Positions 356 through 26,042 of a stretch of 64,000 nt of DNA are shown one piece after another. Location: sequence record NC_006883.2. One strand, 5' to 3'. The translations under genes were made by a program, and so were the position numbers. Under the pieces are notes generated by a model, which saw only the letters and a program-made list of their open reading frames with translations, was not told where the DNA came from and ran no database searches. Within the stretch, counting starts at the first letter, position 1. Every line of letters begins with the position of its first letter.

Positions 356-745
356 ATGTCTATTAAATCAACAATCGCAGCTCTTGCTGCATCACCTTTC
401 CTATTCGCTGGAGCCGCTTTTGCTGGTCCTTACGTGAATGTAGAGGCAAACGCATCATATCCTGATGGAGACTACACAGGTGCTACTACAGACGTTGCTG
501 TAGGTTTCGATGGATCTACTTCTGAAGGTAAGATCGCATACTACATCCAAGGTGGTCCTGCTTTCGTTCACAGTGAGTCTGCTGACGATACTGAGACTGA
601 GTTCTCTGGTAAGGCAGGTGCTTCTCTAGCAGTTAACGAAGATCTTTCAGTTTATGCTGAGATCTCTGGTATCTCTGATGAAGATTCAACTGGCGATGAC
701 ATCGTAAACTTCGGTGGTAAAATCGGTGCTAAGTTCGTATTCTAA
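356..745 (+). CDS. Exported small beta-barrel-like protein (cyanophage family found next to pstS; probably PhCOG173/DUF680-like)
   Basis: Signal peptide ending AFA-GPY, alternating beta-strand pattern, C-terminal Phe; similar to 980..1336. Confidence 0.6.
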   Translation: MSIKSTIAALAASPFLFAGAAFAGPYVNVEANASYPDGDYTGATTDVAVGFDGSTSEGKIAYYIQGGPAFVHSESADDTETEFSGKAGASLAVNEDLSVYAEISGISDEDSTGDDIVNFGGKIGAKFVF

Positions 746-768
746 ATATTAGGAGTTCGAGATGGATC

Positions 769-798
769 AAGACCTCTGCTTTGCAGGGGTCTTTTTTT
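769..798 (+). terminator. Rho-independent terminator
   Basis: AAGACCTCTGC-ttt-GCAGGGGTCTT followed by a T-run. Confidence 0.85.
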
Positions 799-892
799 AT
801 GTGTTGAAGATTACACAGAGATTAAGAAATATAACACAAATATAAAGAAAATGGTAAAAAAATGGTGTCATAGTGATACAGTATAAACGGAT

Positions 893-947
893 ACTAAACT
901 TCCCTTAACCTTCTCTTAGTTTACATATCAATTAAATTTGATATAAT
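893..947 (+). promoter_or_regulatory. Pho-box-like direct repeats plus extended -10, upstream of the 980-pstS operon
   Basis: ACTAAACT (893), CTTAACCT (904), CTTAGTTT (915) at an 11-bp period, matching the cyanobacterial PyTTAAPyPy(T/A) PhoB/SphR box; TGaTATAAT at 939-947. Confidence 0.6.
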
Positions 948-979
948 GTATAGATATTACAGTTTCTTTAAAAAAACTA

Positions 980-1336
980 ATGAAAGCATTCGCAGTTGTC
1001 CTGCTCGCACTTGGTGTATCAGCACCAGCATTTGCAGGCCCGTATGTATCCACCAAGTCCGAATTTAAAGGTAATGAGGATGGATACAGTAAAGCAGCAA
1101 ACCAAGCACGAATCGGAAACACCTTCGATATTGGATTGGGTAAATCCTATATTGAAGCAGGTGGTGGTATTGTATCTCCTGATAGTGGAGATAGTGAAGG
1201 ATTCAAGGTTGCTGAAGTTGGAACCAAGTTTAAGGTAACAGACTCACTCTCTGCTAAAGCAAAGTTTGAGCACAAGTGGTCTCCCGATGATGAGAGAGAC
1301 TGGAAATTTGAAGTAGCAACAAAGTACAAATTCTAA
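980..1336 (+). CDS. Exported small beta-barrel-like protein (PhCOG173/DUF680-like), directly upstream of pstS
   Basis: Signal peptide ending AFA-GPY, C-terminal KYKF; paralog of 356..745. Confidence 0.65.
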   Translation: MKAFAVVLLALGVSAPAFAGPYVSTKSEFKGNEDGYSKAANQARIGNTFDIGLGKSYIEAGGGIVSPDSGDSEGFKVAEVGTKFKVTDSLSAKAKFEHKWSPDDERDWKFEVATKYKF

Positions 1337-4370: not shown

Positions 4371-4399
4371 TTGACTAGATACCTTACATCCATTATAAT
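4371..4399 (+). promoter_or_regulatory. sigma70-like (early) promoter
   Basis: TTGACT-17bp-TATAAT. Confidence 0.8.
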
Positions 4400-5026: not shown

Positions 5027-6028
5027 ATGAAAAAAGCATTAATAACAGGCATAACTGGGCAGGATGGATCTTATCTTGCCGAGTTTCTTTTGTCTAAGGG
5101 ATATGAAGTTCATGGTATTGTAAGGAGAAGTTCCCTAATCAATACTCATAGAATTGATCATATCTATGAGAAGATCACTCTTCATTATGGAGATCTAACT
5201 GATCCTGTAAATGTTATGGGTGTCATTAGGGCAGTTGAACCTGCTGAGATCTATAATCTTGGTGCTCAAAGTCATGTTAAAGTTTCCTTTGAGATGCCAG
5301 AGTATACTTCTAATGTTGATGCTTTAGGAACTCTTAGAATACTTGAAGCAGTTCGTATGTTGGGAATGGAGAAAGATGTTCGCATCTATCAGGCATCTAC
5401 CAGCGAACTGTATGGTGGTGTTCTAGGCACTCCACTATCAGAAACCACACCATTTCATCCACGCTCTCCTTATGGTGTAGCAAAGTTGTATGGTTATTGG
5501 ATCATCAAGAATTATCGTGAGTCATATGGATTCCACGCTAGTTCTGGTATTCTCTTCAATCACGAATCTCCAAGAAGAGGTGAGACATTTGTAACTCGTA
5601 AGATTACACAAGGTTTATCTAAGATCTCTGTTGGATTACAGAAGATTCTTTATCTTGGTAATCTTAATGCTAAGAGGGATTGGGGACACGCAAAGGATTA
5701 TGTTGAAGCGATGTGGTTAATGTTGCAACAGGATGAACCCGATGATTATGTGATTGCTACAGGTGAACAGTATTCTGTTAGAGACTTTGTGAATGAAGCA
5801 GCACCCTATTTTGGTTTTAAACTAGAATGGATGGGTGAAGGTGAAGACGAGATTGCTCTCGATTGGAATACTAAAAAAACAATCATCGGAATCAACCCTA
5901 GATACTTCAGACCTGCAGAAGTGGATTCATTATTAGGTGATGCTACAAAAGCAAAAGAAGTTTTAGGTTGGGAACCTAAGATTAAATTTAAAGAATTGGT
6001 TGAGGACATGTGCATTTATGGACAGTAA
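5027..6028 (+). CDS. gmd: GDP-mannose 4,6-dehydratase
   Basis: [46 protein letters not shown]. Confidence 0.97.
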
Positions 6029-6953
6029 TAGTAAAGTATTCGTTGCAGGGCATAAAGGTCTTGTAGGATCTGCGATATATCGTAATCTAGAATCTAAGCA
6101 TTATCAAAATATCTATTGGATAGGAAGAGATAACTGTGATCTAAGAAATAAGTTAGAGGTTGATGCATACTTTAAGCAATCGAAACCTGAGTATGTATTT
6201 CTTGCTGCTGCTAAGGTAGGTGGTATAGGTGGTAACTCTACCTATCCTGCCGATTTCATCTATGACAATCTGATGATTCAGACAAATGTTATTGATGCTG
6301 CATATCGTAATGGAGTTAAGAAACTATTGTTTCTAGGTTCATCTTGCATCTATCCTAAGTTTCCAAAGATACCTATTACAGAGGATCAGTTACTTGCTAG
6401 TCCTTTGGAAGAATCTAATAGTGCTTATGCAATTGCAAAGATAGCAGGTATGAGGATGTGTCAAGCATATCGTCAGCAGTATGGATTTAATGCAATATCA
6501 TTAATGCCTACTAATCTATACGGACCTAATGATAATTTTGATATTAATAATGGTCATGTATTACCATCACTCATCGCTAAGTTCCACGGATCACTTGAGA
6601 AGAGTGAGCACTGGGTTGTTAAGTTATGGGGTGATGGATCTCCGAAGAGAGAGTTCCTTCATGTTGATGATCTAGCAGAAGCTTGTGTTAAGTGTATGCA
6701 AGAGTATGATGATGAAGAACACATTAATGTTGGCACAGGTGAAGATGTAACTATCAAAGAACTTGCTGAAACTATTGTTGATGTGGTAGGATATAAGAAC
6801 CATTATGAATGGGATACCAGCAAACCAAATGGAACTCCACGCAAAGTATTGAATGTGGATAAGATGAAGTCACTTGGTTGGGAACCTAAGATTGGTCTTA
6901 GGGAAGGTATTGAATCTACTTATGAGTGGTATAAAGAAAATGTCAGAGACTAA
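6018..6953 (+). CDS. fcl: GDP-L-fucose synthase (Fcl/WcaG)
   Basis: [48 protein letters not shown]; start moved to the internal ATG (MDSNSK). Confidence 0.95.
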
Positions 6954-7800
6954 AAGAATCCTTATTCTTGGATCAAGTGGTCAGATAGGAGCATACCTAA
7001 CAGAATACTTTAAGAAAAAAGATTATGATGTTAGGGAGTTTGATATTGTAAATGGTGAAGATCAAGACATTAGAAAGTTTGAGAGTTCAACTTTACACGC
7101 AGCGATTAGTACTGCTGACTTTATTTTCTTCCTTGCCTTTGATGTTGGTGGATCAAGGTACTTGAAAAAGTATCAACATACCTTTGATTTCATTCATAAC
7201 AACTCAAGGATAATGGTAAATGCCTTTGATTATATAAAAAGGTATGAAAAACCGTTCGTTTTCGCATCATCTCAGATGTCGAACATGGGTCATTCACCCT
7301 ACGGTGTTCTTAAAAATGTAGGAGAACTGTATACAAAATCCTTAAATGGGTTGGTAGTTAAGTTCTGGAACATATATGGTATAGAAAAGGATATGGATAA
7401 GTCCCATGTGATTACTGATTTCATTAAAAAGGGATTTGAAACTGGCACTATTGACATGATTACAGATGGCACGGAAGAAAGGGAATTTCTATACGCTGAA
7501 GATTGTTGCGAAGCGTTGGATACGGTTATGTCTAAGTACTCTGAGTTCACTAGCGATAATGATCTTCATATTACTTCTGGCAATTCTACAAGTATTTTGG
7601 AGATTGGTAGAGAAATACAAAAGTTATTCAAAGGTATCGGTAAGGAAATCGAGGTTGTCCCCTCTGAAGAGAAGGATGTTGTACAGAAGGACGCAAGAAA
7701 TATCGCAGATCCATTCTTTAGAAAATGGTGGGAACCAAAAACTTCCTTAGTAGAAGGTATCGGTAAAGTGTTTAATGAGATGAAAAATGACAAAGGTTAG
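6940..7800 (+). CDS. NAD-dependent epimerase/dehydratase (extended SDR)
   Basis: ILGSSGQIG Rossmann motif, YGVLK (YxxxK), REFLYAEDC. Confidence 0.85.
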   Translation: MSETKRILILGSSGQIGAYLTEYFKKKDYDVREFDIVNGEDQDIRKFESSTLHAAISTADFIFFLAFDVGGSRYLKKYQHTFDFIHNNSRIMVNAFDYIKRYEKPFVFASSQMSNMGHSPYGVLKNVGELYTKSLNGLVVKFWNIYGIEKDMDKSHVITDFIKKGFETGTIDMITDGTEEREFLYAEDCCEALDTVMSKYSEFTSDNDLHITSGNSTSILEIGREIQKLFKGIGKEIEVVPSEEKDVVQKDARNIADPFFRKWWEPKTSLVEGIGKVFNEMKNDKG

Positions 7801-8566
7801 TACGATTACACCTTGCTATAATATGGGCAAGTATATGCAAGGTTTCCTTGAGAATCTTTCTAAGCAAACTCATAAGGATATTGAGATAGTGATGGATCAT
7901 AATAATCCTTCAGATGAAGAGGTTACTATGATTGAAGAATATAATGAAATCTATGATAATATCTTTCACATTCAAGTAGAAGGTGTTGATCCTATTGGCA
8001 TCTCTATGAACAGATGTATTGAAAATGCGTCTGGTGAATACTTGTGTATATGGAATATAGATGATCTAAGAACACCTGATTCTGTTGAGATGATGGCAAA
8101 GGCATTAGACGATAACCCTGATGTTGATTTTGTATATGGAGACTTTACTATAGTTCCACGATTCAGATCTACTGAAGGAGAGTATGTTGATAATGCTGGT
8201 AGAGAGGATCTACTCAAGGTTGGAATGATTCTCGGACCTTTCTTTATGTTTAGGAAATCTATTCTAAAGATGACTAAGGTATTTGATGAGCAATTAGTAT
8301 CGGGTGCTGATTATGATCTAGCATTACGATTAGCTCATAATGGTAAAGGAATGCATATACCCCATAACTCAGGTTATTATCTGAATGAGGGATTAGGTGC
8401 AAGCACTAGACCAGACAGTAAGCAACCAGTAGAGAGGACTGTGATTGAAATGAGATACGGATTAGATGTTATTGACCCACGGTTGATACCTTATACAAGT
8501 GATTATGATATTGAGAATGTTCATAATGGAACTTTTAAATTTAAAGCCAAGTGTTTAGTAGCATGA
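7787..8566 (+). CDS. Glycosyltransferase family 2
   Basis: VSTITPCYN, NIDD, GADYDLALR. Confidence 0.85.
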   Translation: MTKVSTITPCYNMGKYMQGFLENLSKQTHKDIEIVMDHNNPSDEEVTMIEEYNEIYDNIFHIQVEGVDPIGISMNRCIENASGEYLCIWNIDDLRTPDSVEMMAKALDDNPDVDFVYGDFTIVPRFRSTEGEYVDNAGREDLLKVGMILGPFFMFRKSILKMTKVFDEQLVSGADYDLALRLAHNGKGMHIPHNSGYYLNEGLGASTRPDSKQPVERTVIEMRYGLDVIDPRLIPYTSDYDIENVHNGTFKFKAKCLVA

Positions 8567-9465
8567 AAGTAATTGCCTTATTGCCATTTAAAAATGAAGA
8601 ATGGTGTTTACCTGCATACCTTCACAATACAAAGGTAATCGCAGATGAGATTATTGCCATAGATGATGGATCTACCGATGATTCTGTAAAAATTTTAGAA
8701 TATGCTGGTGCAAAAGTATATTCCTCAGAAAAACTAAGGAACTTTAATTCTGGTTGGTCTGAAGGATCTATTCGTGCAGAGTTATTAAGATTAGGTAGAG
8801 AAGCAGAAGGAACTCATTTTGTTTGCTTAGATGCTGATGAATCTTTTAGTAATAACTTTGCGGTATTAGCAAAACAGATATTACCTCAAGTTAAACCAGG
8901 TAAAAAGATTGCTATGCAATGGTTGGCACTATGGAAAAGTTATACTCATTATAGACATGATTCTACTGTGTGGAGTGATAACTGGAAGGAGTTTATATTT
9001 GCAGATGATCCATCATTAAGTTATAACTCAGAACAACATATGCATCTTGGTAGAACACCTGTTTCTCCTGATGAATCTGGTGATTCTAATTGGTTGCGTA
9101 TAGATCAAAATATTGGAACCGTATTACATTTCCAATTTGCTGCATATAATAATTTCCAATTAAAGCAATCTTGGTTTAGATGTTCGGAATTAATTCAAGC
9201 ACCAGGTACAGAAGCAGCGATTAATGCTAAGTATTCTATTACATTATTAGATGATAATGTTGGTCTTAAGGAGATGCCTGAAGTTTGGTATGAGGGTATT
9301 CCTATGCCTACGATTGGATATGATCCAGAGTGGGGTGAAGATTCGTTTGCTAGAAAGGATCTATTACCAGGTATAATGAAGTACTTTGATGATTATGGTG
9401 TTGAGTATTTTAAAGGTTTAGATATTTGGCACATACCACAACTAAAGGAAAGATTAGATGGGTAA
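8563..9465 (+). CDS. GT-A fold glycosyltransferase (GT2-like)
   Basis: PFKNEE, IDDGSTDDS, CLDADE. Confidence 0.8.
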   Translation: MKVIALLPFKNEEWCLPAYLHNTKVIADEIIAIDDGSTDDSVKILEYAGAKVYSSEKLRNFNSGWSEGSIRAELLRLGREAEGTHFVCLDADESFSNNFAVLAKQILPQVKPGKKIAMQWLALWKSYTHYRHDSTVWSDNWKEFIFADDPSLSYNSEQHMHLGRTPVSPDESGDSNWLRIDQNIGTVLHFQFAAYNNFQLKQSWFRCSELIQAPGTEAAINAKYSITLLDDNVGLKEMPEVWYEGIPMPTIGYDPEWGEDSFARKDLLPGIMKYFDDYGVEYFKGLDIWHIPQLKERLDG

Positions 9466-10069
9466 TATTCAATCTATTTTTCCAGTACCCATATACATGG
9501 ATAAAGCAGAGGGAGAAAATTTTAAATTAATTCAAGAGGAACTCCTTTCTATCACTGAAAAAATTGAATTTTCTCAAAGAAAGGGGTGGAATAAAGATAC
9601 TCATATGTTGAATAAAGATCCTTTTTCTACTAATTTTTTATTTGACAACAATTGCCAAAATACTGTGAGATTTATCTATGAATCTGCTACCGAGTATGTT
9701 CAAAATATTGCTGGTCATCCTGATTATCAATATAGTATAATAGAATCTTGGATAACTAAAACATTAAAAGGTCAGTATGCTCATGAACATCATCATGGTG
9801 CTACTGATATTTCAGGGGTATATTATATTAACACTAATGGAGAAGATGGTAATTTGATATTTGATAATATTCACAGTCAAATGGCTGGTAATTTTGTATT
9901 TTCTTCATTGGTTTTTGATCACAAACTGCCTTTAGAAAATGGTTTACTTATTCTTTGGCCAGGACTACTTAGACATAGAACACAAGAAAACACTACTGAT
10001 AATGAAAGATTGAGTTTAAGTTTTAATATTATGATAGGAAGAAAGGGGTTTGTAGTAGAAAATGGTTAG
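9458..10069 (+). CDS. 2OG-Fe(II) oxygenase (TIGR02466-like)
   Basis: SIFPVPIY start, HHHGATDISGVYY, LILWPGLLRH, RLSLSFN. Confidence 0.85.
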   Translation: MGNIQSIFPVPIYMDKAEGENFKLIQEELLSITEKIEFSQRKGWNKDTHMLNKDPFSTNFLFDNNCQNTVRFIYESATEYVQNIAGHPDYQYSIIESWITKTLKGQYAHEHHHGATDISGVYYINTNGEDGNLIFDNIHSQMAGNFVFSSLVFDHKLPLENGLLILWPGLLRHRTQENTTDNERLSLSFNIMIGRKGFVVENG

Positions 10070-11204
10070 TGCGAGAATCAATTTAGATCATTACTTTGAT
10101 CCTAATGAAAAGAGAATCAGAGTTGCTTTCATAAAGTTCTGTGGTATGGCTACAGGTGGTACTGAGAAGGTTCTACAAACTATTGCTTCAAACTTAGATA
10201 AGAATAAGTTTCTAGTAGATTTTTATTACTGTGATTCTGCACCTTATATTGGATCTGATTTCGTTCATCCTGATAATGATCTTGATAGGATGGCATATTG
10301 TTATGCTGGTGGTGTAAGATTAATTAAGTTTTTTGTAAAGAATAAAGATCTAAGAGTTCCCACACACGATTGGATAGGTACTGATTTCTGGGATGTATTT
10401 AAAGAGAGTAGATATGATGTAATACAGACTGGTCGTGCTGGACATCCAGAATATCCTTTCACCTTAATTAATAACACTCCTATAGTTGATAGTATTCATC
10501 TGGCAGGGATGGCAGAGGATAAACCAAATGTATATAAGACAGTTTTAATATCTAAGGATCAAAGGGACAGATGGGTTAGTGCTGGTGGTCCTAGAGATAG
10601 ATCGGTAATCATACCAAACCCAGTAGAGATACCTGATTATACTGACAGTTATATACAGAAATTAAAATTAAGAAGGAAGTTTGTATTTGGTATGCATCAA
10701 AGAGATGATGATGGTATCTTCTCTAGTATTCCTTTAGATGCATATAAAACTATTGAAAGTGATAAGACTCATTTTATAATGTTAGGTGGAAGTGCTAGAT
10801 ATAAAAAGCAAGCAGAAGATCTTGGTATTAAGAATATTACTTTCTTACCAACGGTGTCTGATTTAGAATCTATTCATAAGTTTTTGAACACATTAAAGGT
10901 ATATTCACACGGTAGAGCAGATGGCGAACAGTGTTCTTGTGCTATAATAGAAGCACTAGCACATAATTTACCTGTGATTAGTCATACTGCACCTAGTATG
11001 GGTCATTTAGAACAGATAGGTAATGCTGGTAAAGTGGTTTCTAATCCTGTTGAATACTCTGAGGTAATGATTAAATTGATTGAGGATAAGGAATATTATA
11101 AAGAATGTTCTACTAATGCAAAGAAAAGGTTTGATTCTATCTATGGTATGGATGCAATTATATCAAGATACTCTGCCATCTATGAGGAAATAAAAAATGG
11201 ATGA
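10062..11204 (+). CDS. GT-B glycosyltransferase (GT4-like)
   Basis: GGTEKVL; GEQCSCAIIEALAHNLPVI (E-x7-E). Confidence 0.85.
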   Translation: MVSARINLDHYFDPNEKRIRVAFIKFCGMATGGTEKVLQTIASNLDKNKFLVDFYYCDSAPYIGSDFVHPDNDLDRMAYCYAGGVRLIKFFVKNKDLRVPTHDWIGTDFWDVFKESRYDVIQTGRAGHPEYPFTLINNTPIVDSIHLAGMAEDKPNVYKTVLISKDQRDRWVSAGGPRDRSVIIPNPVEIPDYTDSYIQKLKLRRKFVFGMHQRDDDGIFSSIPLDAYKTIESDKTHFIMLGGSARYKKQAEDLGIKNITFLPTVSDLESIHKFLNTLKVYSHGRADGEQCSCAIIEALAHNLPVISHTAPSMGHLEQIGNAGKVVSNPVEYSEVMIKLIEDKEYYKECSTNAKKRFDSIYGMDAIISRYSAIYEEIKNG

Positions 11205-11835
11205 TATATCTTACACTAAACATAATTCTCATTATGTTCAGGACTCTGCTCTTAGTGCAGAGAAAATGGCACATGAAAGAAACAATATAGAAAACTTTAA
11301 ATTTTTATATCAACCAGATGTTCCTCACGGTGATGTATTAGACAGTACTAAATTTAAAACTGCTGTTGATATTGGATCTGGTACTGGATGGTTTGCTAAT
11401 TATCTTGTTAATGAGAGAAAGTATAGTAAGGTATATGCAATAGAACCATCTGAATCTGCTATTGATATTTCTAAACAAATATATCCTGATCAGAAGAAAG
11501 TGAAATATATAAATGGGTTTGCTGAAGAAGAGTTATCAAAAATAAAGTTGACAAAACCTTCTTTATTTTCTACTTTATGTGTTCTAACTCATCTTAAGAA
11601 TGAAACTGTAATACCTATTTTAAGTGCTGTTGATAAGATCGCACAAACTGGATCTGTTCTTGCTTGTTCAGAGGCTTGGGGTATTAGACATATAGAAGAT
11701 GCTTGGAATATCAGATCACCTGAATGGTGGGTTGAGAATCTTCCTAATTGGGAATTTGAATTCTATAATGATTATGTTCTTCCTCATCCAACAGATCATC
11801 CACGTTACAAAGGATTTATTGCTACTAAATTATGA
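11197..11835 (+). CDS. Class I SAM-dependent methyltransferase
   Basis: AVDIGSGTGWFA, YAIEPS. Confidence 0.85.
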   Translation: MDDISYTKHNSHYVQDSALSAEKMAHERNNIENFKFLYQPDVPHGDVLDSTKFKTAVDIGSGTGWFANYLVNERKYSKVYAIEPSESAIDISKQIYPDQKKVKYINGFAEEELSKIKLTKPSLFSTLCVLTHLKNETVIPILSAVDKIAQTGSVLACSEAWGIRHIEDAWNIRSPEWWVENLPNWEFEFYNDYVLPHPTDHPRYKGFIATKL

Positions 11836-12626
11836 TTAGTTTTAACAGTCTTGGAAATCTTGGTAGACTTGCTAACCAGATGTTTCAGTATGCTTCATTA
11901 AAAGGTATTGCCAAGAATAGGGGTTTTGATTTTGTCATACCACCTGAAAGTAAGTTTGGAGAATCAGATCCTTTAGTTAGAAGTGATCCTCTTAATATAC
12001 ATAATTGTTTTTATGTTGGTAAACATACTGAGATGGGATTGTATCCTAATGATATGTTTGGTGAAAGGATGCACACCTTTGATAAGGATTTATTTGAACA
12101 GTGTCCTGATAATATAGATCTATTTGGATATTTTCAAACACCAAAGTATTTTAATCATATTGAAGATGAGATAAGAAAAGATTTTTCTTTCTCTAAGGAG
12201 TTGAATGATAGTTGTCAGGATGTAGTGAATAGTTTGGGTGATGATCCAATCTCACTTCATATTCGTAGAACTGATTACAAAGCAAATCCAAATCATCCCT
12301 TACAAACGATAGAGTATTATCAGAGTGCTTTAGATAAGTTACCTAAAGATTCTCCTGTGATTGTATTCTCGGATGATCCTGAGTGGTGTGAGAACCATGA
12401 AGCGTTCTCTGATGATAGGTTTGCTATATCAAATAACGCAGCAGACTTCGATCTATGTTTAATGACTTTATGTAAGTATCATATTATTGCTAACTCATCT
12501 TACTCTTGGTGGGGTGCTTGGTTAGGTAAGAGTGATATGGTTATCGCACCTAAGAATTGGTTTGGTGCTAGTTGTGCTCATAAATCTGTAGAGGATATGC
12601 AATTCGGAGGTTGGATCTGGTTATGA
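11832..12626 (+). CDS. Alpha-1,2-fucosyltransferase (GT11)
   Basis: GRLANQMFQYA, GYFQ, SLHIRRTDY, VFSDD, IIANSSYSWWGAWL. Confidence 0.92.
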   Translation: MISFNSLGNLGRLANQMFQYASLKGIAKNRGFDFVIPPESKFGESDPLVRSDPLNIHNCFYVGKHTEMGLYPNDMFGERMHTFDKDLFEQCPDNIDLFGYFQTPKYFNHIEDEIRKDFSFSKELNDSCQDVVNSLGDDPISLHIRRTDYKANPNHPLQTIEYYQSALDKLPKDSPVIVFSDDPEWCENHEAFSDDRFAISNNAADFDLCLMTLCKYHIIANSSYSWWGAWLGKSDMVIAPKNWFGASCAHKSVEDMQFGGWIWL

Positions 12627-13486
12627 TTAATTTATTTTATGAAGAGGATTATTGGCGTGGTGCTAGAACTTTAAATGGTCCTAAAAAGGTTATTGACAAT
12701 TTAAAGGCATCTTTAGAACAAGAGAAGATACCTTATGCTATTAATGAAGAGAAGTATAAGAATAACTTCTTAGTTCAGTATGACTATAATGCATATCTAA
12801 AACATTCTAAACTTACATTAGAGAACTGTGTGATAGGTCCACAGATATGGATGTTTGATTCTCATATAGAACTAAAGGAGAATCCACATTATTATAAGTC
12901 TATTATTACACCATCTCAGTGGGTAAAGGATCTTTATGTAAGTAAGTTTGGATACCCAGAAGAAAAGATATCTGTCTGGCCAGTTGGTATTACATTACCC
13001 AAATACAAAAGAGAGAAGAAGTATGGGTGTTTGGTTTACTATAAACGTAGAGATGAAGCATCATTATCTAAGGTTAGAGAACTACTAGCAGATAGGCATA
13101 TAACATATAATGTTATGGAGTATGGTCAATATTCTCAGAATGCACTTGAGATACTTGCACCAGAATCAGAATTTTGTTTTGTATTAAATGGGACAGAAAG
13201 TCAGGGTATAGCAATCCAAGAGATTATGAGTTATAACACTCCTATGTTTGTATGGGATATTGAATCTTGGGAGGATCAAGGACCAGAATGGTCTGTTCCA
13301 GCAACATCGATTCCATATTGGTCTGATGAATGTGGTGAAAGATTTGTTAACGCTGATGATATGGACGTGACATTTGATAAGTTTTATAGTAGAATAGGTG
13401 AATATAATCCTCGTAAATATGTTGAGGATAATTTATCTTACAAGAAATCAGTAGAAAAGTTATTGGAGATTTTCGATGCTAATTAG
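12623..13486 (+). CDS. Putative GT-B glycosyltransferase
   Basis: TESQGIAIQEIMSYNTPMFV resembles the GT4 donor-binding motif. Confidence 0.6.
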   Translation: MINLFYEEDYWRGARTLNGPKKVIDNLKASLEQEKIPYAINEEKYKNNFLVQYDYNAYLKHSKLTLENCVIGPQIWMFDSHIELKENPHYYKSIITPSQWVKDLYVSKFGYPEEKISVWPVGITLPKYKREKKYGCLVYYKRRDEASLSKVRELLADRHITYNVMEYGQYSQNALEILAPESEFCFVLNGTESQGIAIQEIMSYNTPMFVWDIESWEDQGPEWSVPATSIPYWSDECGERFVNADDMDVTFDKFYSRIGEYNPRKYVEDNLSYKKSVEKLLEIFDAN

Positions 13487-14096
13487 TTTTAAAGACTTAG
13501 TTAAAAAATATGACCTAAAGATTAGAGGCATTATTCATATTGGTGGTCATCATGGTGAAGAATTAGAAGATTATATTGATGAAGGAATTCAGAATATACT
13601 TTTATTTGAACCTTTAAGTGATTGTTTTGATGTTATAGGATATAAGTGTCAAGATTTAAATGCTAATATTCAAGGGCATCAAGTTGCATTGGGTTCTGAA
13701 AGAGGAATTAAGAAGATGTATGTGAGTGATAATGAAAAGCAAAGTAGTTCTATTTTGAAACCAAAAGTTCATTTAACACATCATCCTCATGTAAAGTTTG
13801 TTGAAACAGAAAACGTAGAGGTTCATCTTTTAGATGATTATATTAAGGATGTTAAAAATTATAATTTTATTAATATGGATGTTCAAGGATATGAACTTGA
13901 AGTATTAAAGGGTGGGAAGAAAGTATTAGAGAATATTAATTATGTTTATTGTGAAGTGAATCGTGATGAGGTTTATGAGAATAATGCATATGTAGAAGAG
14001 ATTGATGAGTTCCTCGCTGATTATGGTATGGAAAGAGTAGAAACCAATTGGGCAGGTGACATTTGGGGTGATGCACTTTATATAAGAACAAAATGA
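13476..14096 (+). CDS. FkbM-family methyltransferase
   Basis: IHIGGHHGEE, FEP, MDVQGYELEVLKG. Confidence 0.9.
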   Translation: MLISFKDLVKKYDLKIRGIIHIGGHHGEELEDYIDEGIQNILLFEPLSDCFDVIGYKCQDLNANIQGHQVALGSERGIKKMYVSDNEKQSSSILKPKVHLTHHPHVKFVETENVEVHLLDDYIKDVKNYNFINMDVQGYELEVLKGGKKVLENINYVYCEVNRDEVYENNAYVEEIDEFLADYGMERVETNWAGDIWGDALYIRTK

Positions 14097-14788
14097 AAAT
14101 TTGTATTTTAACCATAGCAACAAACAAATATATTCAGTTTGTTGAAAAGTTATATGATAATATTGATGATCATTTTTTAAATGGACATGAAATAGAAGGT
14201 ATAATTTTTACTGATCAGGAAGTAGAATCTTCTGATAATATTAAAATATCTCAGATAGAACATGAACCTTGGCCAGTTCCTACTTTGAAGAGATACAATT
14301 ACTTTATGAAAGAAGCAGAGCATATCTCTAAGTATGATTACTGCTTCTATTTTGATGTAGATATGGGTATAGTAGATAAGGTTGGTGATGAGGTCTTAGG
14401 TGATCTTGTTGCTACTATGCATCCATATCAATCTTTTGCTCCTAAGATACAAAGATCATATGATCGTAATCCAAAGTCATTAGCATATGTTCCTTTATAT
14501 GATGAGGGTGAACATTACTATGCTGGTGGATTCAATGGTGGATCTACTAAGAGATTCCTAGAGATGGCAGAGGTTATTGCTGATAGGGTTAATAAGGATC
14601 TTGAGAATGATGTTATTGCTTTATGGCACGATGAGTCGCATTTGAACAGGTATTTGATTGATAATCCACCAACCATAAGTTTAACCCCTTCATATTGTTT
14701 TGCAGAGGAACAGATGAGTAACTTAGAATATCCATATAAACCAAAAATTATTGCATTGAAGAAGGATCATAATGAACTTAGATCTTAG
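14093..14788 (+). CDS. Glycosyltransferase family 6 (ABO/alpha-1,3-Gal(NAc) transferase-like)
   Basis: IATNKY, YFDVDM, YYAGGFNGG, WHDESHLN (the last is identical to the ABO motif). Confidence 0.9.
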   Translation: MKICILTIATNKYIQFVEKLYDNIDDHFLNGHEIEGIIFTDQEVESSDNIKISQIEHEPWPVPTLKRYNYFMKEAEHISKYDYCFYFDVDMGIVDKVGDEVLGDLVATMHPYQSFAPKIQRSYDRNPKSLAYVPLYDEGEHYYAGGFNGGSTKRFLEMAEVIADRVNKDLENDVIALWHDESHLNRYLIDNPPTISLTPSYCFAEEQMSNLEYPYKPKIIALKKDHNELRS

Positions 14789-15410
14789 AACTGTATCAGC
14801 AGTCTATATCAATCTCAAGAAGGATGTAAAAAAAGATTTTGAGATGAAGAGGTTGATGGTTGACTTTGGATTCAAGAATGTTATTCGTGTAGAAGGTAAT
14901 GTTATACCCGATAGACATCTTGCTGGATGTTCTCTCTCACACTATAATGCTCTACATGAAATAGATCCACCCTTTATTATCTTTGAGGATGATTGTGTAA
15001 TCAAAAACAATACACCAGAGATAGAAATACCTGATGATGCAGATGCAGTTTATCTTGGTGTGTCTTCTTGGGGTAGAATGAACTCACACTCAGGACCATT
15101 TGTTCAGTATGAAAAGGTTGATGAAAATCTTGTAAGGGTGTATAATATGCTTGGTGCTCACGCAATATTATATCTGAATCAAGAGTATGCTTCTATGTGT
15201 AGTAGAATCGCTCAGAATGGATATGATATAGCAGATCATCAAGATATAGGATTCGCAGAGATTCAAAGGTACTTTAATGTATATGCCTTTAATGATCCTC
15301 TGTTCTATCAGACAAGTTCTAATGGAACTAATGAACCATTAACTTCATATCCTACACAAGAATTGATGCAACCACATCGTTCATTCTGGAAACCAACAGC
15401 TTTATACTAA
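14772..15410 (+). CDS. GT25-like glycosyltransferase
   Basis: VYINLKK, GCSLSH, IIFEDD. Confidence 0.7.
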   Translation: MNLDLRTVSAVYINLKKDVKKDFEMKRLMVDFGFKNVIRVEGNVIPDRHLAGCSLSHYNALHEIDPPFIIFEDDCVIKNNTPEIEIPDDADAVYLGVSSWGRMNSHSGPFVQYEKVDENLVRVYNMLGAHAILYLNQEYASMCSRIAQNGYDIADHQDIGFAEIQRYFNVYAFNDPLFYQTSSNGTNEPLTSYPTQELMQPHRSFWKPTALY

Positions 15411-16315
15411 TGAGTAAACCCCTAAGTTTAGTAACAGGTGCAGCAGGTTTTATTGGATCAAACCTGACTGACTATCTTCTTGATTTAGATCATCAAGTTA
15501 TATGTGTTGATAATAAGAGTGCTGATAATGATAAGTTCCATTGGAACGATAAGGCATGGAATGTAGATTGTGATATAACAGATTACAAAGCTATGAAGAA
15601 TGTATTCAACAAGGTTGATTATGTTTTTCACTTGGCAGCAGAGTCAAGAATACAATCTGCAATAGACAATCCTATACAGGCAGTTCAGAGGAATTGTGTA
15701 GGTACTGCTACGGTGCTACAGTGTGCTAGAGAAGCTGGCGTAAAGAGATTTGTATATTCTTCAACCTCTTCTGGTTACGGTAATAATCCTTTTCCAAATG
15801 TAGAGACACAACCAGATGATTGTCTGAATCCTTATTCTGCAACTAAGGTTGCTGGTGAGAAACTATGTAAGATGTATACTAATCTCTATGGGTTAGAGAC
15901 AGTTGTTCTTAGATACTTTAATGTCTTTGGGCAGAGATCCCCTACAAAGGGGCAGTATGCTCCTGTGATTGGTATATTCAGAAGGCAGTTAGATAGTAAA
16001 GAACCATTAACTATTGTTGGTGATGGATCTCAGAGAAGAGATTTTGTTCATGTTAATGATGTAGCAAGAGCAAATTATCTTGCATCAATATTACCACTTC
16101 AAGGACACGAGGGTGAAGTGTTTAATGTGGGTAGTGGAAAGAACTATTCTGTTCAAGAGATTGCAGATGTTATTTCTGATAATCAAGTTTATCTTCCAAA
16201 GAGAGAAGGTGAGATGGACACTACTCTTGCTAACATAGATAAGATTGGTAGTATAATAGGATGGAAACCTGAAGTGGATGTAATGGATTGGATTAAAGGT
16301 GAGATGAATGGATAA
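15410..16315 (+). CDS. NAD-dependent sugar-nucleotide epimerase (GalE-like)
   Basis: TGAAGFIGS, SSTSSGYG, NPYSATK, LRYFNVFG, RDFVHVND. Confidence 0.9.
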   Translation: MSKPLSLVTGAAGFIGSNLTDYLLDLDHQVICVDNKSADNDKFHWNDKAWNVDCDITDYKAMKNVFNKVDYVFHLAAESRIQSAIDNPIQAVQRNCVGTATVLQCAREAGVKRFVYSSTSSGYGNNPFPNVETQPDDCLNPYSATKVAGEKLCKMYTNLYGLETVVLRYFNVFGQRSPTKGQYAPVIGIFRRQLDSKEPLTIVGDGSQRRDFVHVNDVARANYLASILPLQGHEGEVFNVGSGKNYSVQEIADVISDNQVYLPKREGEMDTTLANIDKIGSIIGWKPEVDVMDWIKGEMNG

Positions 16316-17099
16316 GAATAAAGCATCTAGTAAACTTAAGGGTTTTCCTCATGTATACTGTATTAACCTTGATGGTGAACCACATAGATGGGAATCTATG
16401 AAAACGATGCTTGAGTATTGGGAAGTAGAAAACTATACTCGTATCTCTGCTTATGATGGTAGAGAGGATGATCTAAGTGATATTCTTAAAGGTAGATACC
16501 CAGATTCTATGACTGGTGGTGAGGTTGGATGTACTACTTCACATCTAAAAGCACTTAAGGAATTTCTTAAGACAGATCAACCTTGTGCTATTGTTATGGA
16601 AGATGATTGTGATCTAAGTCCAGTAGCACACTGGGGATTTACTTGGAAGGATTTCTTTTCAAAGATTCCTTATGATTATGATGTAATTCAATTAGCAATT
16701 ATTAATCCAGCACAGGTACACCTACAGATGCATCGTAGGTTTGTAAATGATTTTTCTACTGCTTGCTATTTGATTACAAGACACCACGCAGAGAAACTTG
16801 TTAGATTACATTGTAGGGGTGAGGATAAGTATAAGTTAGATCAAGGTGTTAAACCTAGAGCAGTTGCAGATGATTTAATATACAATTCAGGTAATACATT
16901 CGCTATGCCACTCTTTCTCTATAAGATTGAGTTAGGATCTTCGATACATGATATTCATATCAATGTATTTCATAAGACAAGTTACGAAGGACTATGGCAG
17001 TTCTGGAGAAACGAATCTCCTAACATTACTGATTGGAATGCTTTGTTTTCGTATGATCCGTACTTCAACCGTATTCCACCAGGTTTTGAAGGTAAGTAA
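16308..17099 (+). CDS. Glycosyltransferase family 25
   Basis: YCINLD, GEVGCTTSH, VMEDD. Confidence 0.85.
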   Translation: MDKNKASSKLKGFPHVYCINLDGEPHRWESMKTMLEYWEVENYTRISAYDGREDDLSDILKGRYPDSMTGGEVGCTTSHLKALKEFLKTDQPCAIVMEDDCDLSPVAHWGFTWKDFFSKIPYDYDVIQLAIINPAQVHLQMHRRFVNDFSTACYLITRHHAEKLVRLHCRGEDKYKLDQGVKPRAVADDLIYNSGNTFAMPLFLYKIELGSSIHDIHINVFHKTSYEGLWQFWRNESPNITDWNALFSYDPYFNRIPPGFEGK

Positions 17100-17115: not shown

Positions 17116-17137
17116 GGGGGTCATTAGACCCCCTTTT
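17116..17137 (+). terminator. Rho-independent terminator
   Basis: GGGGGTC-atta-GACCCCC-TTTT. Confidence 0.8.
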
Positions 17138-17158: not shown

Positions 17159-17215
17159 GTTACACTTCTTTACAAAGGTTAAGGTTTACTATATAATTAT
17201 GTAAAGAAACGTTAC
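17159..17215 (+). promoter_or_regulatory. sigma70-like promoter of the hli cluster flanked by two HLR1 (RpaB)-like sites
   Basis: TTTACA 17169-17174, 17 bp, TATAAT 17192-17197; GTTACACT-tc-TTTACAAA at 17159-17176 and (minus strand) GTAACGTT-tc-TTTACATA at 17198-17215. Confidence 0.65.
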
Positions 17216-19429: not shown

Positions 19430-19629
19430 TGAGAGAAAAACTACTTAAGGCACTTCTAGCACACGCTAATGGAGATATCCAAAAGCATGTTGCTAATGTA
19501 GAAGTCTACCTAGAAAATCCTGCTGGTATTGGAGAACACTCCAATATCGTAGAAGCAATCGAAGAAGAACTTAATATGATTGCCAAATATCAGGATCAAA
19601 TTGAGGTAATCAAAACATATTTCAAATAA
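19429..19629 (+). CDS. Conserved cyanophage hypothetical protein
   Basis: NPAGIGEHSNIVEAIEEEL motif; coupled to petF. Confidence 0.75.
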   Translation: MREKLLKALLAHANGDIQKHVANVEVYLENPAGIGEHSNIVEAIEEELNMIAKYQDQIEVIKTYFK

Positions 19630-19656
19630 TATAAGTCTTTCTTATTAAATAATAGT

Positions 19657-19881
19657 ATGTTATTTCCACGACGCTATGCTAGTTGCCCTTGGCCTGATTC
19701 TAGGTACAGAGAGTATATGAACGGACGACTTAAAAAGATCGATATGAAAGCCCGACTTATGGGTATTAAAAAAGGTATCGATGAGAAGGTATGGTATCCT
19801 GAATGGGATAGTAAAGAAAGATGGGCAGCTCAAAGAGCACTTAATAATGCCTTAGATGTCCTTGACGAATACGACTACTAA
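19657..19881 (+). CDS. Conserved cyanophage hypothetical protein
   Basis: ORF preceded by TAAATA. Confidence 0.7.
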   Translation: MLFPRRYASCPWPDSRYREYMNGRLKKIDMKARLMGIKKGIDEKVWYPEWDSKERWAAQRALNNALDVLDEYDY

Positions 19882-19905
19882 ATATCTAAAAGACGTAGAT
19901 CTTTA

Positions 19906-22900
19906 ATGTCGTATTTTAAGAAAGCAAGAAGTTATACAAAACCTTCAGTAACTCTTGATGAAAAGATTGCAAAAGCAAATCAAGAGTATGAGAAGACGGG
20001 TGTTGACTTAGTAGAGATTGCTAACAGCACTGCTGGTGTTTATTATGCTGGTATAGATCACCCAGAAGAGCCTGCTATTCCGAGTGATGTGCCAGATTCA
20101 AATGGATTTAGAAGTAGAGATCCAAGTCTTCCTGCTGAGAATGCTTCTGATATAGATCCTTCTGATCCATCCACATGGGAAACTGGTGGACAGGGTATGG
20201 ATCATTTAATAAATCCAAATGAATTACCTGTAATTCATGGTGATAATGGAGTAGAAACTCAGTCTACTGTTAAAGATCAACCAATATTAATAACACCAGA
20301 CCTTACAGGATTTAAAGGATTGAGAGTTGACCCAAATGGTGATCAGAATGACATGGGTCAGTATGGTGGTATAGCGTATACTTATAATTTGGGTGTTTGG
20401 GGTAGGACAGAAGGTGTTATAGGACCTGGTAATAAATTTGTATCGGTATTAGCTGCATTTGGTTGGCCAACTGGTCCACTTGTAGATTCTGGTCATCCAG
20501 ACTATCCATCAGATAGAGCTATGTTTGGATTTTATAGGTATGATGATAATGCGACCTATGCTGCAAGGTTGAAAATGAAAGCGTTGTATGCGAATGGTTT
20601 ACCATCGGGTTCTTGGAAACCAGTTAAGTGTTGGATGAATTTTAATTCATATGGATTTGGTCAGACATGGACACAATATACATCAAATCCAAATAATATA
20701 TGGAGAGCGAATGGTGATGCATATGTCACAGTTCATGTATATGATGGTGCAAATCAATATAATTCGACAGATACTGTACCACCATATACAACGGTAATAT
20801 TTAAAGACGATATTGGTAAAGGAGAGAATCTACCTATTGGTGGTTTATTAGGAGATTTAATAGGAAAATTATTTGGTATAGGTGGATCTGCTGCTGAAGA
20901 CCTTGCTTGGCTTGGTGGTGGTAAGAAAACTCCAAATTGGCCAAAACCAGGAACTCTTAGTGGTAATAGAATAAGAAGTGAAGCAGGGTATGCACAGGAT
21001 GGAGCTTATCCTGGAGGACCACAAGCCTTTGAAGATAAGTATGGATATACTCCCCAAGAGGCAATTGATGCTTATAATAATGGAGGAACTCCTCCAGACC
21101 AATCATCTACTGGTGGTGATATTGGTGATATTGCAGGATCTTGGAGTGGTGGTCCTAGAGTAGCACCAGGAACAGGAGGTAATAAAGGACCTCATCCTGG
21201 ACCAGGTTGGAAATGGTATCCTGATGCTAAAGGTGGACAGGGAGATTATCTTCCTATACCAAAAGTAGATGCTGGTGGGGGTGGATCTCAAGTTGCATCC
21301 GCATCACAAACTTCACCATTTCCTTCAGATCCTGCATCCGATGCTTCATCTGGTTTAGGTGTTCAAGATGGTGATCAACTTGCTTTCAATTGGGGTAATT
21401 CAGGAACACCATCAACAAATAAAAAATTGGGTCATGGAGCTGATACGAATGCTGTTAATTATGCTAATACTAATGGAGAAATGGGCGGACTTCCTGATGG
21501 TTGGACAGATCAAGATCTTCAGGATTATCTAGACAATAGAGATAAGGGATTTCCAGACCAATCATCTATTGATGCTGGTTTACCTAATCAAATGGTTGCA
21601 GCACTTAATAATGCACAGATGCCGCAATATGTTAAGGATTCTATTAAGAGACAGTATAAAGGTGGACCTGATTATTCCATAGAAGATAAGAAAAATATTC
21701 TTAACTGGCAGCAAAAGATGAAAGTAGATGCTGGTGGTTCTGATTGGACTCCAAGTAGCGGAGTTCAAGTTGCTTCAACTGATCTTAGTGGTTTATTTGG
21801 ATCAAGTGGAACTGGAAGTGGTTCAACAGGTCAATTAAATCTGCCTAGTTGGTTTTCTGGTTATGGAAATGCCAAGAATGCTAAGTTAGATGCTGATGGT
21901 AGAATATATGGATATAATTATTCTGGTGGATATGGATACTTAAGTAGAGGACCTGGATCAGGTGCTCCTGGTACAGCAGAATCGGGTTATGGCACTAAAG
22001 GATTTGATTGGGATACTCAATCAGGTGGAACCAGTTGGTCATTTACTCGTCACGATCCATCTAAAGTTGCTGCTTCTCCTAATAGTCCTGATCCAGTTAA
22101 GCCTGGAGATGTTCCTACAGCCCCTAGTAGTCCTTATCTACCAGGTAAATCACCATATAAAGTTGCTGCAAATGCAGGACCTTCTACTCCTGTTAAAAAT
22201 TATGATGGTAAATTTTTACCTAATATGGGTGGTGGAAGACCTGGAAACATAAGACCAAAAGGTAGTGCTGCATTTCCACAGGCAAAGAAAGATGATACTG
22301 GTAGAGGTGGTAAGGGTAATAATTTTGGTATGGGTTCTGCTGTTGTTACTAAAGGTAAGAAAAAGAAGAATAACAAGCTTGTTACAGCTTCAAATGAAAT
22401 AACAGGAGTATTTTTAAATGAAAGTAATCTCTTAATGGAGAAGAATTATCTGAGAGATTTGAGAGAGAAGAAAAGAGAAAAGAAAAATGCTGGTGATAAA
22501 GTCATGAAGATTAATATAACTGGACCAAAAGATCATCTTACTGTCAAGGCAATTGATATGCTTAGACAATATAAAGTTAGTGAAAAGGAGATGCAAGAGT
22601 ATGCAACCATAATCTCAGATATTAATCAGTGGATAAGAGAGAATCCAAAAGAGTATGAGATATGGAAAGTAAGATATCCAGCAAATGATCCTAGAACTGC
22701 TGAGTTAAACTGGAGATTGGATCAGCAGTTAAAAGCATCAGATGAATATATGGATTCTCATTTCCCAGAGAATGAAAAATTATTTGGAAAACTTAGGCAG
22801 AAGATTGCTACTAATGTTGATATAACAGACCCTCGTAATTTCAAAGATGTTAAACCAGTAGTAACTCATAAGAAGTTATTACAGGTTTCAAAGGCATTAG

Positions 22901-25307: not shown

Positions 25308-26009
25308 ATGACAGTAGCAGATTTTTCAGTTCAAATAAAAGAGGGAACAAAGAAGTCCCATTCAGCAGCAGAGAATACTTCTTTCGTTGCATCATTTCTT
25401 AGAGGTGTTGTAAGTAAAGAAAGTTATAAAGCATTAGTAAAGGATCTGTATTATGTTTACAGAACCTTGGAAGAGGAGTTTGAAAAGCATAAGGATCATC
25501 CTGTAGTTGGAAAACTTTACCTCCCAGAACTTAATAGAGTTAATGCACTTGAAAGAGATCTTAGATTCTATTATGGACCTATATGGAGATCTTTAATTAT
25601 GCCTTCTGAGGCTTGTGCCAATTATGTAAGTAGAATCAAATGTTGTTCTATTGAAGATCCTACTCTATTAGTTGGACATCATTACACAAGATACTTGGGT
25701 GATTTATCAGGTGGACAGATACTTAAAGGTATTGCTGAGAAAGCAATGGGTCTCAAGGATGAAGGATTATATTTCTATGATTTTGATAAGATAGAAAATG
25801 CCAAGAAATATAAGGATGGGTATAGAGCAATTCTTAATGGACTCGATGTAGATCAACATCAAGTAGATGCTATTATAGTAGAAGCGAATTATGCTTTTAG
25901 ATTAAACATGTATATGTTTGATACCTTAGAAGGTAATTGGTTCCAGTCATTAATACAAATGATATTTGGTTTTATCAAGTCAATTCTAAAGAAAAGAAAA
26001 AGCGAATAG
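25308..26009 (+). CDS. ho1: Heme oxygenase
   Basis: KEGTKKSHSAAENT, HHYTRYLGDLSGGQIL, EANYAFRLN. Confidence 0.96.
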   Translation: MTVADFSVQIKEGTKKSHSAAENTSFVASFLRGVVSKESYKALVKDLYYVYRTLEEEFEKHKDHPVVGKLYLPELNRVNALERDLRFYYGPIWRSLIMPSEACANYVSRIKCCSIEDPTLLVGHHYTRYLGDLSGGQILKGIAEKAMGLKDEGLYFYDFDKIENAKKYKDGYRAILNGLDVDQHQVDAIIVEANYAFRLNMYMFDTLEGNWFQSLIQMIFGFIKSILKKRKSE

Positions 26010-26042
26010 TAATCAATAAATAATTGTAACTCGCAATAGTTT

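Follow-up and report, generated by a model that had tools for sequence, protein, structure and literature searches.

The window analysed here is a stretch of 64,000 nt from sequence record NC_006883.2, and its positions 5027–17099 hold 15 genes, PSSM2_257 to PSSM2_271, all on the plus strand, which form an operon for nucleotide-sugar supply and glycan assembly. By megablast this segment is 100 % identical to positions 193428–205500 of the genome of Prochlorococcus phage P-SSM2 (NC_006883.2); other matches are to P-SSM5 (99.5 % identity) and to the single-cell-derived virus AG-345-E02 (94.4 %). Neighbouring genes overlap by 1–32 nt, with one 34 nt gap as the sole exception. Thus, the initial annotation was right to describe gmd, fcl and genes of glycosyltransferase families 11 (GT11) and 6 (GT6) as parts of one overlapped operon. 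The span flagged there, 5027–14788, does contain these genes, but the unit is larger, extending through 15 genes to 17099. In the deposited annotation they are listed as epimerases, glycosyltransferases, one methyltransferase, one 2-oxoglutarate (2OG) oxygenase and three hypothetical proteins. Upstream of the operon are talC and pstS, and a row of hli genes follows it. The view that this module makes a blood-group-A-like glycan is plausible, albeit unproven, from the sequences considered below.

The first two genes account for GDP-L-fucose. PSSM2_257 (5027–6028) encodes a GDP-mannose 4,6-dehydratase, Gmd, which scores 539 bits against TIGR01472 (cut-off 415; Pfam E 6e-147). PSSM2_258 (6018–6953) encodes a GDP-L-fucose synthase, Fcl, with 462 bits against NF047922, slightly under the equivalog cut-off of 500, and an end-to-end alignment with the Escherichia coli GDP-fucose synthetase 1BSV (E 8e-101). 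An alternative TTG start for Fcl is present at 6000. With Gmd above its cut-off and Fcl matched over its full length, the pair is predicted to provide the complete de novo pathway, and the earlier claim of a GDP-fucose supply stands. So does that of a GT11 enzyme: the product of PSSM2_265 (11832–12626), a predicted alpha-1,2-fucosyltransferase, matches PF01531 (E 7e-26; 91.6 bits, cut-off 23.9) and carries both family motifs, HIRRTDY (HxRRxDY) and SSYSWW ((S/T)(S/T)(F/Y)SWW). Both motifs are kept in 43 of 56 viral homologue hits; the remaining 13 show neither, and we interpret them as incomplete tblastn matches or as additional paralogues.

PSSM2_268 (14093–14788) encodes the GT6, a minimal DXD-type enzyme predicted to be an alpha-1,3-N-acetylgalactosamine (GalNAc) transferase. 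It belongs to the family by PF03414 (E 1e-40; 139.9 bits, cut-off 25), and against the NCBIfam subfamily model NF041524 it scores 197 bits, under the cut-off of 250. The three motifs previously attributed to it, DVD, YYAGGFNGG and WHDESHLN, can all be read in the product, as D88-V-D90 (FDVDMG), HYYAGGFNGG at residues 141–150 and WHDESHLN at 178–185. The GT6 said to be ‘already known from P-SSM2’ is this same gene, the stretch being P-SSM2. The best solved relatives are BoGT6a of Bacteroides ovatus (PDB 4AYJ and 4AYL; E 8e-39 for 4AYJ) and the human blood-group A transferase GTA (E 1e-33) in pairwise HMMER comparisons, and residue roles were mapped by pairwise HMMER sequence alignment to BoGT6a and the human ABO transferases. 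In this mapping D211-V-D213 of GTA corresponds to D88-V-D90 of the phage enzyme, H233 to H110, G235 to Y112, F236 to Q113, T245 to S122, L266-G267-G268 to A144-G145-G146, W300 and E303 to W178 and E181, A343 to A221, K346 to K224 and R352 to R230.

The catalytic Glu (E181 in WHDE), the DXD motif and the C-terminal Lys and Arg (K224 and R230) are all present. Across 77 viral GT6 homologues the DXD motif, His110, Ala144, Trp178, Glu181, Ala221 and Lys224 are invariant, and Arg230 is found in 59/59 of those aligning at that position. The donor triplet A144-G145-G146 is identical to A155-G-G of BoGT6a and thus has the small residues expected for UDP-GalNAc. BoGT6a is a proven GalNAc-specific UDP-GalNAc:2′-fucosyllactose transferase. 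PaGT6, which belongs to the DXD clade like the P-SSM2 enzyme, has been assayed and makes the A antigen, while being inactive on N-acetyllactosamine (LacNAc) (Thiyagarajan 2012, PMC3516806). In the same work a 2′-fucose is accommodated when the residue at the A343 position is small and is excluded by Trp356 of alpha3GT, and the conserved acceptor contacts of BoGT6a are His122, Thr134, Trp189 and Glu192. The pocket that tolerates fucose (Fuc) is kept in the phage enzymes, as H110 (His233 of GTA) and A221 (Ala343) are unvaried among the 77 homologues.

The initial annotation spoke of the ‘full logic’ of glycan synthesis, yet it lacked a step for the beta-linked hexose, probably galactose (Gal), that GT11 would need. 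The conserved core of the operon offers two candidates. PSSM2_271 (g271, 16308–17099) encodes a GT25 glycosyltransferase, a candidate beta-Gal/glucose (Glc) transferase, by PF01755 (47.1 bits, cut-off 24). PSSM2_269 (g269, 14772–15410), annotated as ‘hypothetical’, has no Pfam or NCBIfam match, but its family profile matches mimivirus R655 (E 9e-5) and its AlphaFold2 model (predicted local distance difference test, pLDDT, 85) finds R655, human COLGALT1 and a bacterial beta-1,4-galactosyltransferase as best Foldseek matches, with mimivirus R699 also among them. It has a GC-x-SH...EDDC block in common with g271, and its E72-D73-D74 is invariant. As profile, motif and fold agree, g269 is best described as a GT25-like GT-A glycosyltransferase rather than a demonstrated member of GT25. 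A second ‘hypothetical’ product, g266 (PSSM2_266, 12623–13486), is by its predicted model (AlphaFold2, pLDDT 90) a compact GT-B-fold glycosyltransferase; its top Foldseek matches are GT-B enzymes (E 2e-8), the protein O-glycosyltransferases SdgB and GtfA among them, and it sits between GT11 and GT6 in many related loci. Sequence searches of solved structures with GT11, g271 and g266 gave no match. With g266 and g269 identified as transferases, the operon encodes eight glycosyltransferases.

Between g269 and g271 lies PSSM2_270 (15410–16315), whose product (SDR4) is 4-epimerase-like and a candidate UDP-GlcNAc/UDP-GalNAc epimerase. Its best matches in the PDB are 4-epimerases, led by TmGalE of Thermotoga (4ZRM) and followed by the UDP-GlcNAc/GalNAc enzymes WbpP and WbgU, and its segment SSTSSGYG is without the Asp-Glu dyad of 4,6-dehydratases. 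A Thr aligns with Ser306 of WbpP, a gatekeeper position at which a small residue goes with N-acetylated substrates.

The core of this operon recurs widely in marine viruses. Relatives of the GT6 are encoded at 326 loci in IMG/VR, as a scan of that database showed, and a word-based protein search gave more than 1,100 clusters. Eighty loci were fetched for comparison of gene order (62 after dereplication; the counts allow for contig ends), and among these the order [Gmd-Fcl]-GT11-...-GT6-g269-SDR4-...-GT25 recurs, while the two GT2s, the GT4, the methyltransferases, the 2OG oxygenase and the third SDR enzyme (SDR3) of P-SSM2 are rare. The most constant GT6 neighbour in marine viral contigs is g269, present in 48/57 loci; of the 52 loci that have g269, 41 place its start no more than ~62 nt from the GT6 stop codon. 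SDR4 is present in 31/44 loci, GT25 in 26/36 and GT11 in 28/33 within 10-kb flanks. Phages that carry GT6 and lack GT11 appeared at first to exist, but 5/5 such apparent negatives have GT11 farther along the contig, and this class was rejected. One viral contig type (L045, 3952–4662 and 6045–6662; L046 likewise) carries two GT6 paralogues ~1.4 kb apart, the second being 35 % identical to the P-SSM2 GT6 with a cellular-type HPGFY acceptor motif. In two other contigs the GT6 domain is found inside longer open reading frames (ORFs), L067 5725–7716 (663 aa) and L071 9188–10900 (570 aa), perhaps as a fusion with further domains.

Sullivan 2010 (PMC3037559) left open whether such cyanophage clusters hold functional genes or non-functional ‘stuffer DNA’ that fills an enlarged capsid. 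In comparison with AG-345-E02, the ratio of nonsynonymous to synonymous substitution rates (dN/dS) is 0.055 for GT11, 0.064 for GT6, 0.070 for g269, 0.088 for SDR4, 0.048 for GT25 and 0.064 for Gmd, and it lies between 0.05 and 0.14 for 11 of the 15 genes against this 94 %-identical relative and between 0.05 and 0.27 against more distant loci. All reading frames are intact, all catalytic motifs are kept, many contigs have the genes in the same order and the stretch occurs in RNA libraries from culture and in a marine metatranscriptome. A value that would fit a filler is that of the 2OG oxygenase, with a dN/dS of 0.92 on few substitutions (dS 0.04). Given core values of 0.05–0.09, the ‘stuffer DNA’ explanation is hardly credible, the selection analysis having in effect refuted it. 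Compared with AG-345-E02, Fcl and SDR3 have diverged far more (87 and 74.5 % amino acid identity, dN/dS ~0.3) than the other thirteen genes (92–99 %), and the segment 6018–7800 of the operon may therefore be a recombination patch.

No transmembrane segment is predicted in any of the 15 operon proteins. The whole 252-kb P-SSM2 genome has no match to Bac_transf (PF02397), and a genome-wide hydropathy scan, which stood in for the Wzx, Wzy and WaaL Pfam families (not all individually searched) and was of moderate sensitivity (it caught 3 of 5 psbA helices), found no large polytopic ORF. A few small hydrophobic ORFs occur elsewhere in the genome, all without a Pfam match. Two of them, extremely hydrophobic and of 189 and 144 aa, are located at 19545–20114 and 25914–26348 of the P-SSM2 record, outside the window (545–1114 and 6914–7348 of locus L179), and are the sole candidate phage membrane proteins able to touch lipid-linked glycans. 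By the Bac_transf search, the hydropathy scan and the Pfam search of the small ORFs, a phage-encoded flippase or priming enzyme was thus not found. With no priming transferase, transporter, polymerase or ligase detected, the cluster does not have the makeup of a Wzx/Wzy- or ABC-dependent O-antigen or lipopolysaccharide (LPS) cluster. Lacking membrane and lipid-carrier machinery, the module must take its acceptor from another source.

A comparable gene set exists in host-type chromosomes. The nearest cellular relatives of the phage GT6, judged from the best 80 matches, are in Dependentiae and Chlamydiota, whose homologues likewise have the A-G-G triplet; picocyanobacteria are not among these 80. 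A Pfam search found GT6 in 12 of 401 sampled cyanobacterial genomes, 11 of which are 1.6–2.2 Mb in size, and ten of the GT6 loci from these small genomes have 29–34 % GC. Phycobilisome genes are absent in 4/4 of the small GT6-bearing genomes tested, compared with 15 in the Moorena control. Size, low GC and the lack of phycobilisome genes identify these carriers as Prochlorococcus-type cells. Their GT6s are NXN-type (one QxN), 27–39 % identical to the phage GT6 and fall in a separate NXN clade, and a recent host origin of the phage gene was rejected on these grounds. In two of the genomes (L168, and L173 at ~9700–16500) the GT6 lies beside GT11, Gmd and Fcl. In L168 these form a compact four-gene GT11-Gmd-Fcl-GT6 cassette of soluble enzymes at 6816–10617, with ilvC and a YhdP-like gene at one end and surE, dnaJ and uvrC at the other. 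No paper on this Prochlorococcus-type cassette was found in the searchable literature. GT11, Gmd and Fcl have thus been brought together twice, independently, with GT6s of different lineages, and this is the strongest comparative argument that the GT6 acts on a fucosylated acceptor.

The explanation that best accounts for these data, and one that we hold with moderate confidence, is that the operon of soluble enzymes caps a host envelope glycan with a blood-group-A-like terminal trisaccharide. Its linkages, donor, order of action and target are inferred from gene identities, conservation, selection and residue states, which were themselves observed. The 15 enzymes would work in the cytoplasm of the infected Prochlorococcus cell, where Gmd and Fcl would provide GDP-L-fucose and a glycan would be extended in three steps. 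A beta-hexose, probably Gal, would be laid down by GT25 and/or the GT25-like g269; GT11 would add Fuc in alpha-1,2 linkage; and GT6, in a reaction dependent on metal (DXD), would use UDP-GalNAc to cap the product with alpha-1,3 GalNAc. The SDR4 4-epimerase would belong to this conserved core together with GT25/g269, GT11 and GT6, while the two GT2s, the GT4, g266, the two methyltransferases, the 2OG oxygenase and the third SDR are probably lineage-specific elaborations in P-SSM2. The most likely acceptor would be a lipid-linked envelope glycan of the host, exported by host machinery so that the surface of the infected cell is remodelled.

Several points weigh against this reading, and they concern the acceptor, the sugar donors, expression and the target. 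At the acceptor site, Tyr112 and Gln113 replace the contacts Gly235 and Phe236 of GTA and BoGT6a, and Ser122 stands at the Thr245 equivalent. Tyr is found at position 112 in 57 and Gln at position 113 in 46 of the 77 viral homologues, and the Tyr-Gln pair of the cyanophage clade contrasts with Gly-Phe/Tyr in the cellular DXD clade. A lactose-like sugar beyond Fuc-Gal is therefore improbable, and the assignment of the acceptor class is not quite firm. The A-antigen-like trisaccharide proposed in the initial annotation thus agrees with the retained His233 and Ala343 equivalents but not with Tyr112 and Gln113, which are unlike those of every A/B synthase.

It could be, then, that GT6 is an alpha-1,3-Gal/GalNAc transferase with an acceptor other than Fuc-alpha1,2-Gal, or that GT11 fucosylates another sugar; the product would be a fucosylated, methylated glycan of cyanobacterial type with no blood-group-like epitope. 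Apart from the two residues, which set the phage enzyme off from all characterized fucosyl-acceptor GT6 enzymes, alpha3GT has at the aligned position a bulky Trp in contact with the sugar that follows Gal, and the six further transferases or modifying enzymes between gmd and GT6 imply a more complex glycan. The vertebrate GT6 paralogues alpha3GT, Forssman synthase and iGb3 synthase use non-fucosylated acceptors. However, practically all contigs tested have GT6 and GT11 together, and Gmd and Fcl are frequently present as well; the two also form part of the stand-alone four-gene cassette in the host. The Trp356 by which alpha3GT excludes fucose is Ala in 77/77 viral enzymes, and PaGT6, the relative that has been assayed, rejects LacNAc. 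This alternative is regarded as somewhat unlikely, and the A-like trisaccharide is retained as the preferred product.

Regarding the donors, the assignment of UDP-GalNAc to GT6 draws on the A-G-G triplet in common with BoGT6a and on kinship with PaGT6, but neither a reported activity of the phage enzyme nor a biochemical assay of a GT6, GT11 or GT25 from any cyanophage was found in the searchable literature. Supply of UDP-GalNAc by the GalE-like gene, also proposed earlier, is favoured by the WbpP and WbgU relatives of SDR4 and by its retention with A-G-G GT6s (see below), but SDR4 scores only 170 bits against TIGR01179, for which the GalE equivalog cut-off is 262, and it could epimerize a different nucleotide sugar. 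GT25 enzymes also transfer Glc. As for expression, the whole stretch is contained at 100 % identity in the RNA-seq libraries of one culture study, and 118 pieces of it are found at 95–100 % identity in a marine metatranscriptome, although these data are assembled contigs in which DNA carry-over is possible and transcription is thus not proven. A sigma70-type promoter-like site (TTGACT-17-TATAAT, 11/12 match) at 4371–4399 on the plus strand precedes three small ORFs leading into gmd; it is a consensus match alone, and such sites in the region are not above the chance count.

The target, host surface or virion, is the last of these points. The same chemistry could be directed at phage structural proteins (capsid, tail or fibres), and virions would then carry an A-like fucosylated glycan in a manner resembling glycosylation in chloroviruses and mimivirus and that of mycobacteriophage virions. 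Chloroviruses, for instance, have genes for Gmd and GMER, and their capsid protein is fucosylated. A set of 15/15 soluble proteins with no lipid-carrier machinery suits direct glycosylation of protein, the structural matches of g269 include R655 and R699 from a virus-encoded glycosylation system of mimivirus, and those of g266 include the protein O-glycosyltransferases SdgB and GtfA. On the other hand, the operon lies among host-like auxiliary genes (talC, pstS, hli) and outside the structural module, the promoter match is of sigma70 type, and a motif scan found no T4-late TATAAATA box within the gene cluster. Prochlorococcus chromosomes hold an analogous cassette of soluble enzymes where there are no phage proteins to decorate, and virion glycosylation of cyanomyoviruses is not mentioned in the literature found. 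The neighbourhood rich in auxiliary metabolic genes, the sigma70-type match without a late-type box and the soluble-only host cassette favour the host surface; decoration of the virion is a live rival, though an unlikely one.

Within the viral GT6s the donor site is dimorphic. Fifteen unique viral sequences have YYAAAF(V/A)GG where the P-SSM2 type has YYAGGFNGG. This subclade, found at loci L050–L066, L068 and L072 (GT6 at ~10001–10730 of each), carries Pro at the Thr245 equivalent. Ala at position 268 is the state of the Gal transferases GTB and alpha3GT, and from this residue the A-A-A enzymes are predicted to use a Gal donor. In a quick maximum-likelihood tree, with support from the Shimodaira–Hasegawa-like approximate likelihood ratio test (SH-aLRT) only, the A-A-A variant arose once (SH-aLRT 100) on a long stem branch (0.69), nested within the A-G-G cyanophage clade. 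Among loci with enough flank, SDR4 is kept in 21/23 with A-G-G and 4/11 with A-A-A (Fisher p 0.0017), in a test that ignores phylogeny and for a pattern that needs at least two loss events. This co-variation fits a role of SDR4 in serving the GalNAc donor, but is only suggestive.

A-like and once-derived B/alpha-Gal-like phage GT6s, together with the NXN cassette of the host, raise the possibility of an ABO-like glycan polymorphism in marine picocyanobacteria and their phages, in which infected cells are repainted by the phage. This broader idea is speculative and, as matters stand, improbable. If true, repainting may serve superinfection exclusion, avoidance of progeny adsorption to lysing cells or evasion of grazers, and terminal Fuc-Gal-(Gal/GalNAc) epitopes would be a battleground analogous to the histo-blood groups of vertebrates, between partners that are among the most abundant biological entities of the ocean (P-SSM2-like myoviruses and Prochlorococcus). 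Cyanophage surface manipulation has so far been discussed generically as ‘LPS genes’, and a defined terminal epitope, if really installed on infected cells or virions, would give an assayable handle on it through lectins, anti-A/B antibodies and recombinant enzymes. Minimal DXD GT6s are widespread in marine phages, their donor-site switches parallel the A/B switch, and they have been proposed as the ancestral type; the findings thus bear on the origin of vertebrate ABO-type GT6.

Much of the gene-level finding has been published before. Sullivan 2005 describes 24 ‘LPS genes’ in two P-SSM2 clusters and proposes alteration of the host surface during stalled infection, and Sullivan 2010 (PMC3037559) lists T4-GCs 260, 265 and 266, which correspond here to GT11, SDR4 and GT25, as common to P-SSM2, S-SM2 and S-SSM7. 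Gmd, Fcl and an alpha-1,2-fucosyltransferase were annotated earlier in cyanophage S-SCSM1, and Thiyagarajan 2012 (PMC3516806) took the ‘PSSM-2’ GT6 as the type of the minimal DXD prokaryotic clade, with many marine-metagenome relatives. The P-SSM2 operon is the LPS or cell-wall cluster of these cyanophage accounts (Sullivan 2005, 2010; S-SCSM1, S-SCSM2R), in the accessible parts of which the genes are treated generically, GT6 and GT11 are not linked to an epitope, and g266 and g269 are hypothetical.

PaGT6 of Parachlamydia acanthamoebae and its ‘clade 1’ resemble the P-SSM2 GT6 in consisting of a minimal catalytic domain (~230 aa) that carries a DXD motif and is not followed by a domain for membrane binding, but identity is ~40–45 % and Tyr-Gln stands at the 235/236 equivalents in the phage enzyme. 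BoGT6a has the same YYAGG donor motif, and with GTA/GTB it has the WHDES block and the equivalents of His233, Ala343, Lys346 and Arg352; it differs in being NXN-type and metal-independent and in binding membranes through its C-terminal domain. The human enzymes GTA and GTB have a stem region and are type II membrane proteins, whereas the P-SSM2 GT6 is soluble and made up of the DXD domain alone. The O-antigen cluster of E. coli O86, one of the bacterial clusters of histo-blood-group type, reportedly contains wbnI (GT6), wbnK (GT11), gmd, fcl and gne, and is said to include wzx and wzy and to depend on a priming transferase. P-SSM2 and O86 would thus share the logic of GDP-fucose supply, GT11, GT6, a beta-Gal transferase and a UDP-hexose/HexNAc 4-epimerase, although the P-SSM2 cluster has no membrane protein. 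The novelty implied by the initial annotation was therefore overestimated, as both the cluster and the GT6 with its DXD motif had been in print before, and the increment here is moderate. What is new is the recurrence of a core module and the purifying selection on it, the recognition of g266 and g269 as transferases, the two forms of the donor site with the associated loss of the epimerase, the parallel host cassette and the lack of export machinery in the phage.

The remaining genes of the operon are accessory. PSSM2_259 (6922–7800) encodes SDR3, a third SDR nucleotide-sugar enzyme (Pfam Epimerase, E 3e-22) with just weak partial matches to Fcl and UXS, which few related loci have. It is followed by two GT2 glycosyltransferase genes, PSSM2_260 (7835–8566; PF00535, E 1e-17), found in ~7/80 related loci, and PSSM2_261 (8563–9465; PF00535, E 9e-9). 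PSSM2_262 (9458–10069) encodes the 2OG-Fe(II) oxygenase (PF13759, E 5e-16), which is missing from almost all related loci. A GT4 (GT-B) glycosyltransferase is encoded by PSSM2_263 (10062–11204; PF00534, E 2e-12), a methyltransferase dependent on S-adenosylmethionine by PSSM2_264 (11197–11835; Methyltransf_11/25, E ~1e-5) and an FkbM-family methyltransferase by PSSM2_267 (13476–14096; PF05050, E 1e-17).

The end of the operon is followed at 17116–17133, on the plus strand, by an intrinsic-terminator-like hairpin with a 7-bp stem (6 GC pairs) and a TTTT run; like the promoter call, this is a consensus match and not proof of a transcription signal. A second 11/12 sigma70-like match is located directly after this terminator, at 17169–17197, ahead of hli03, and the glycan operon and the hli array thus look like separate units.

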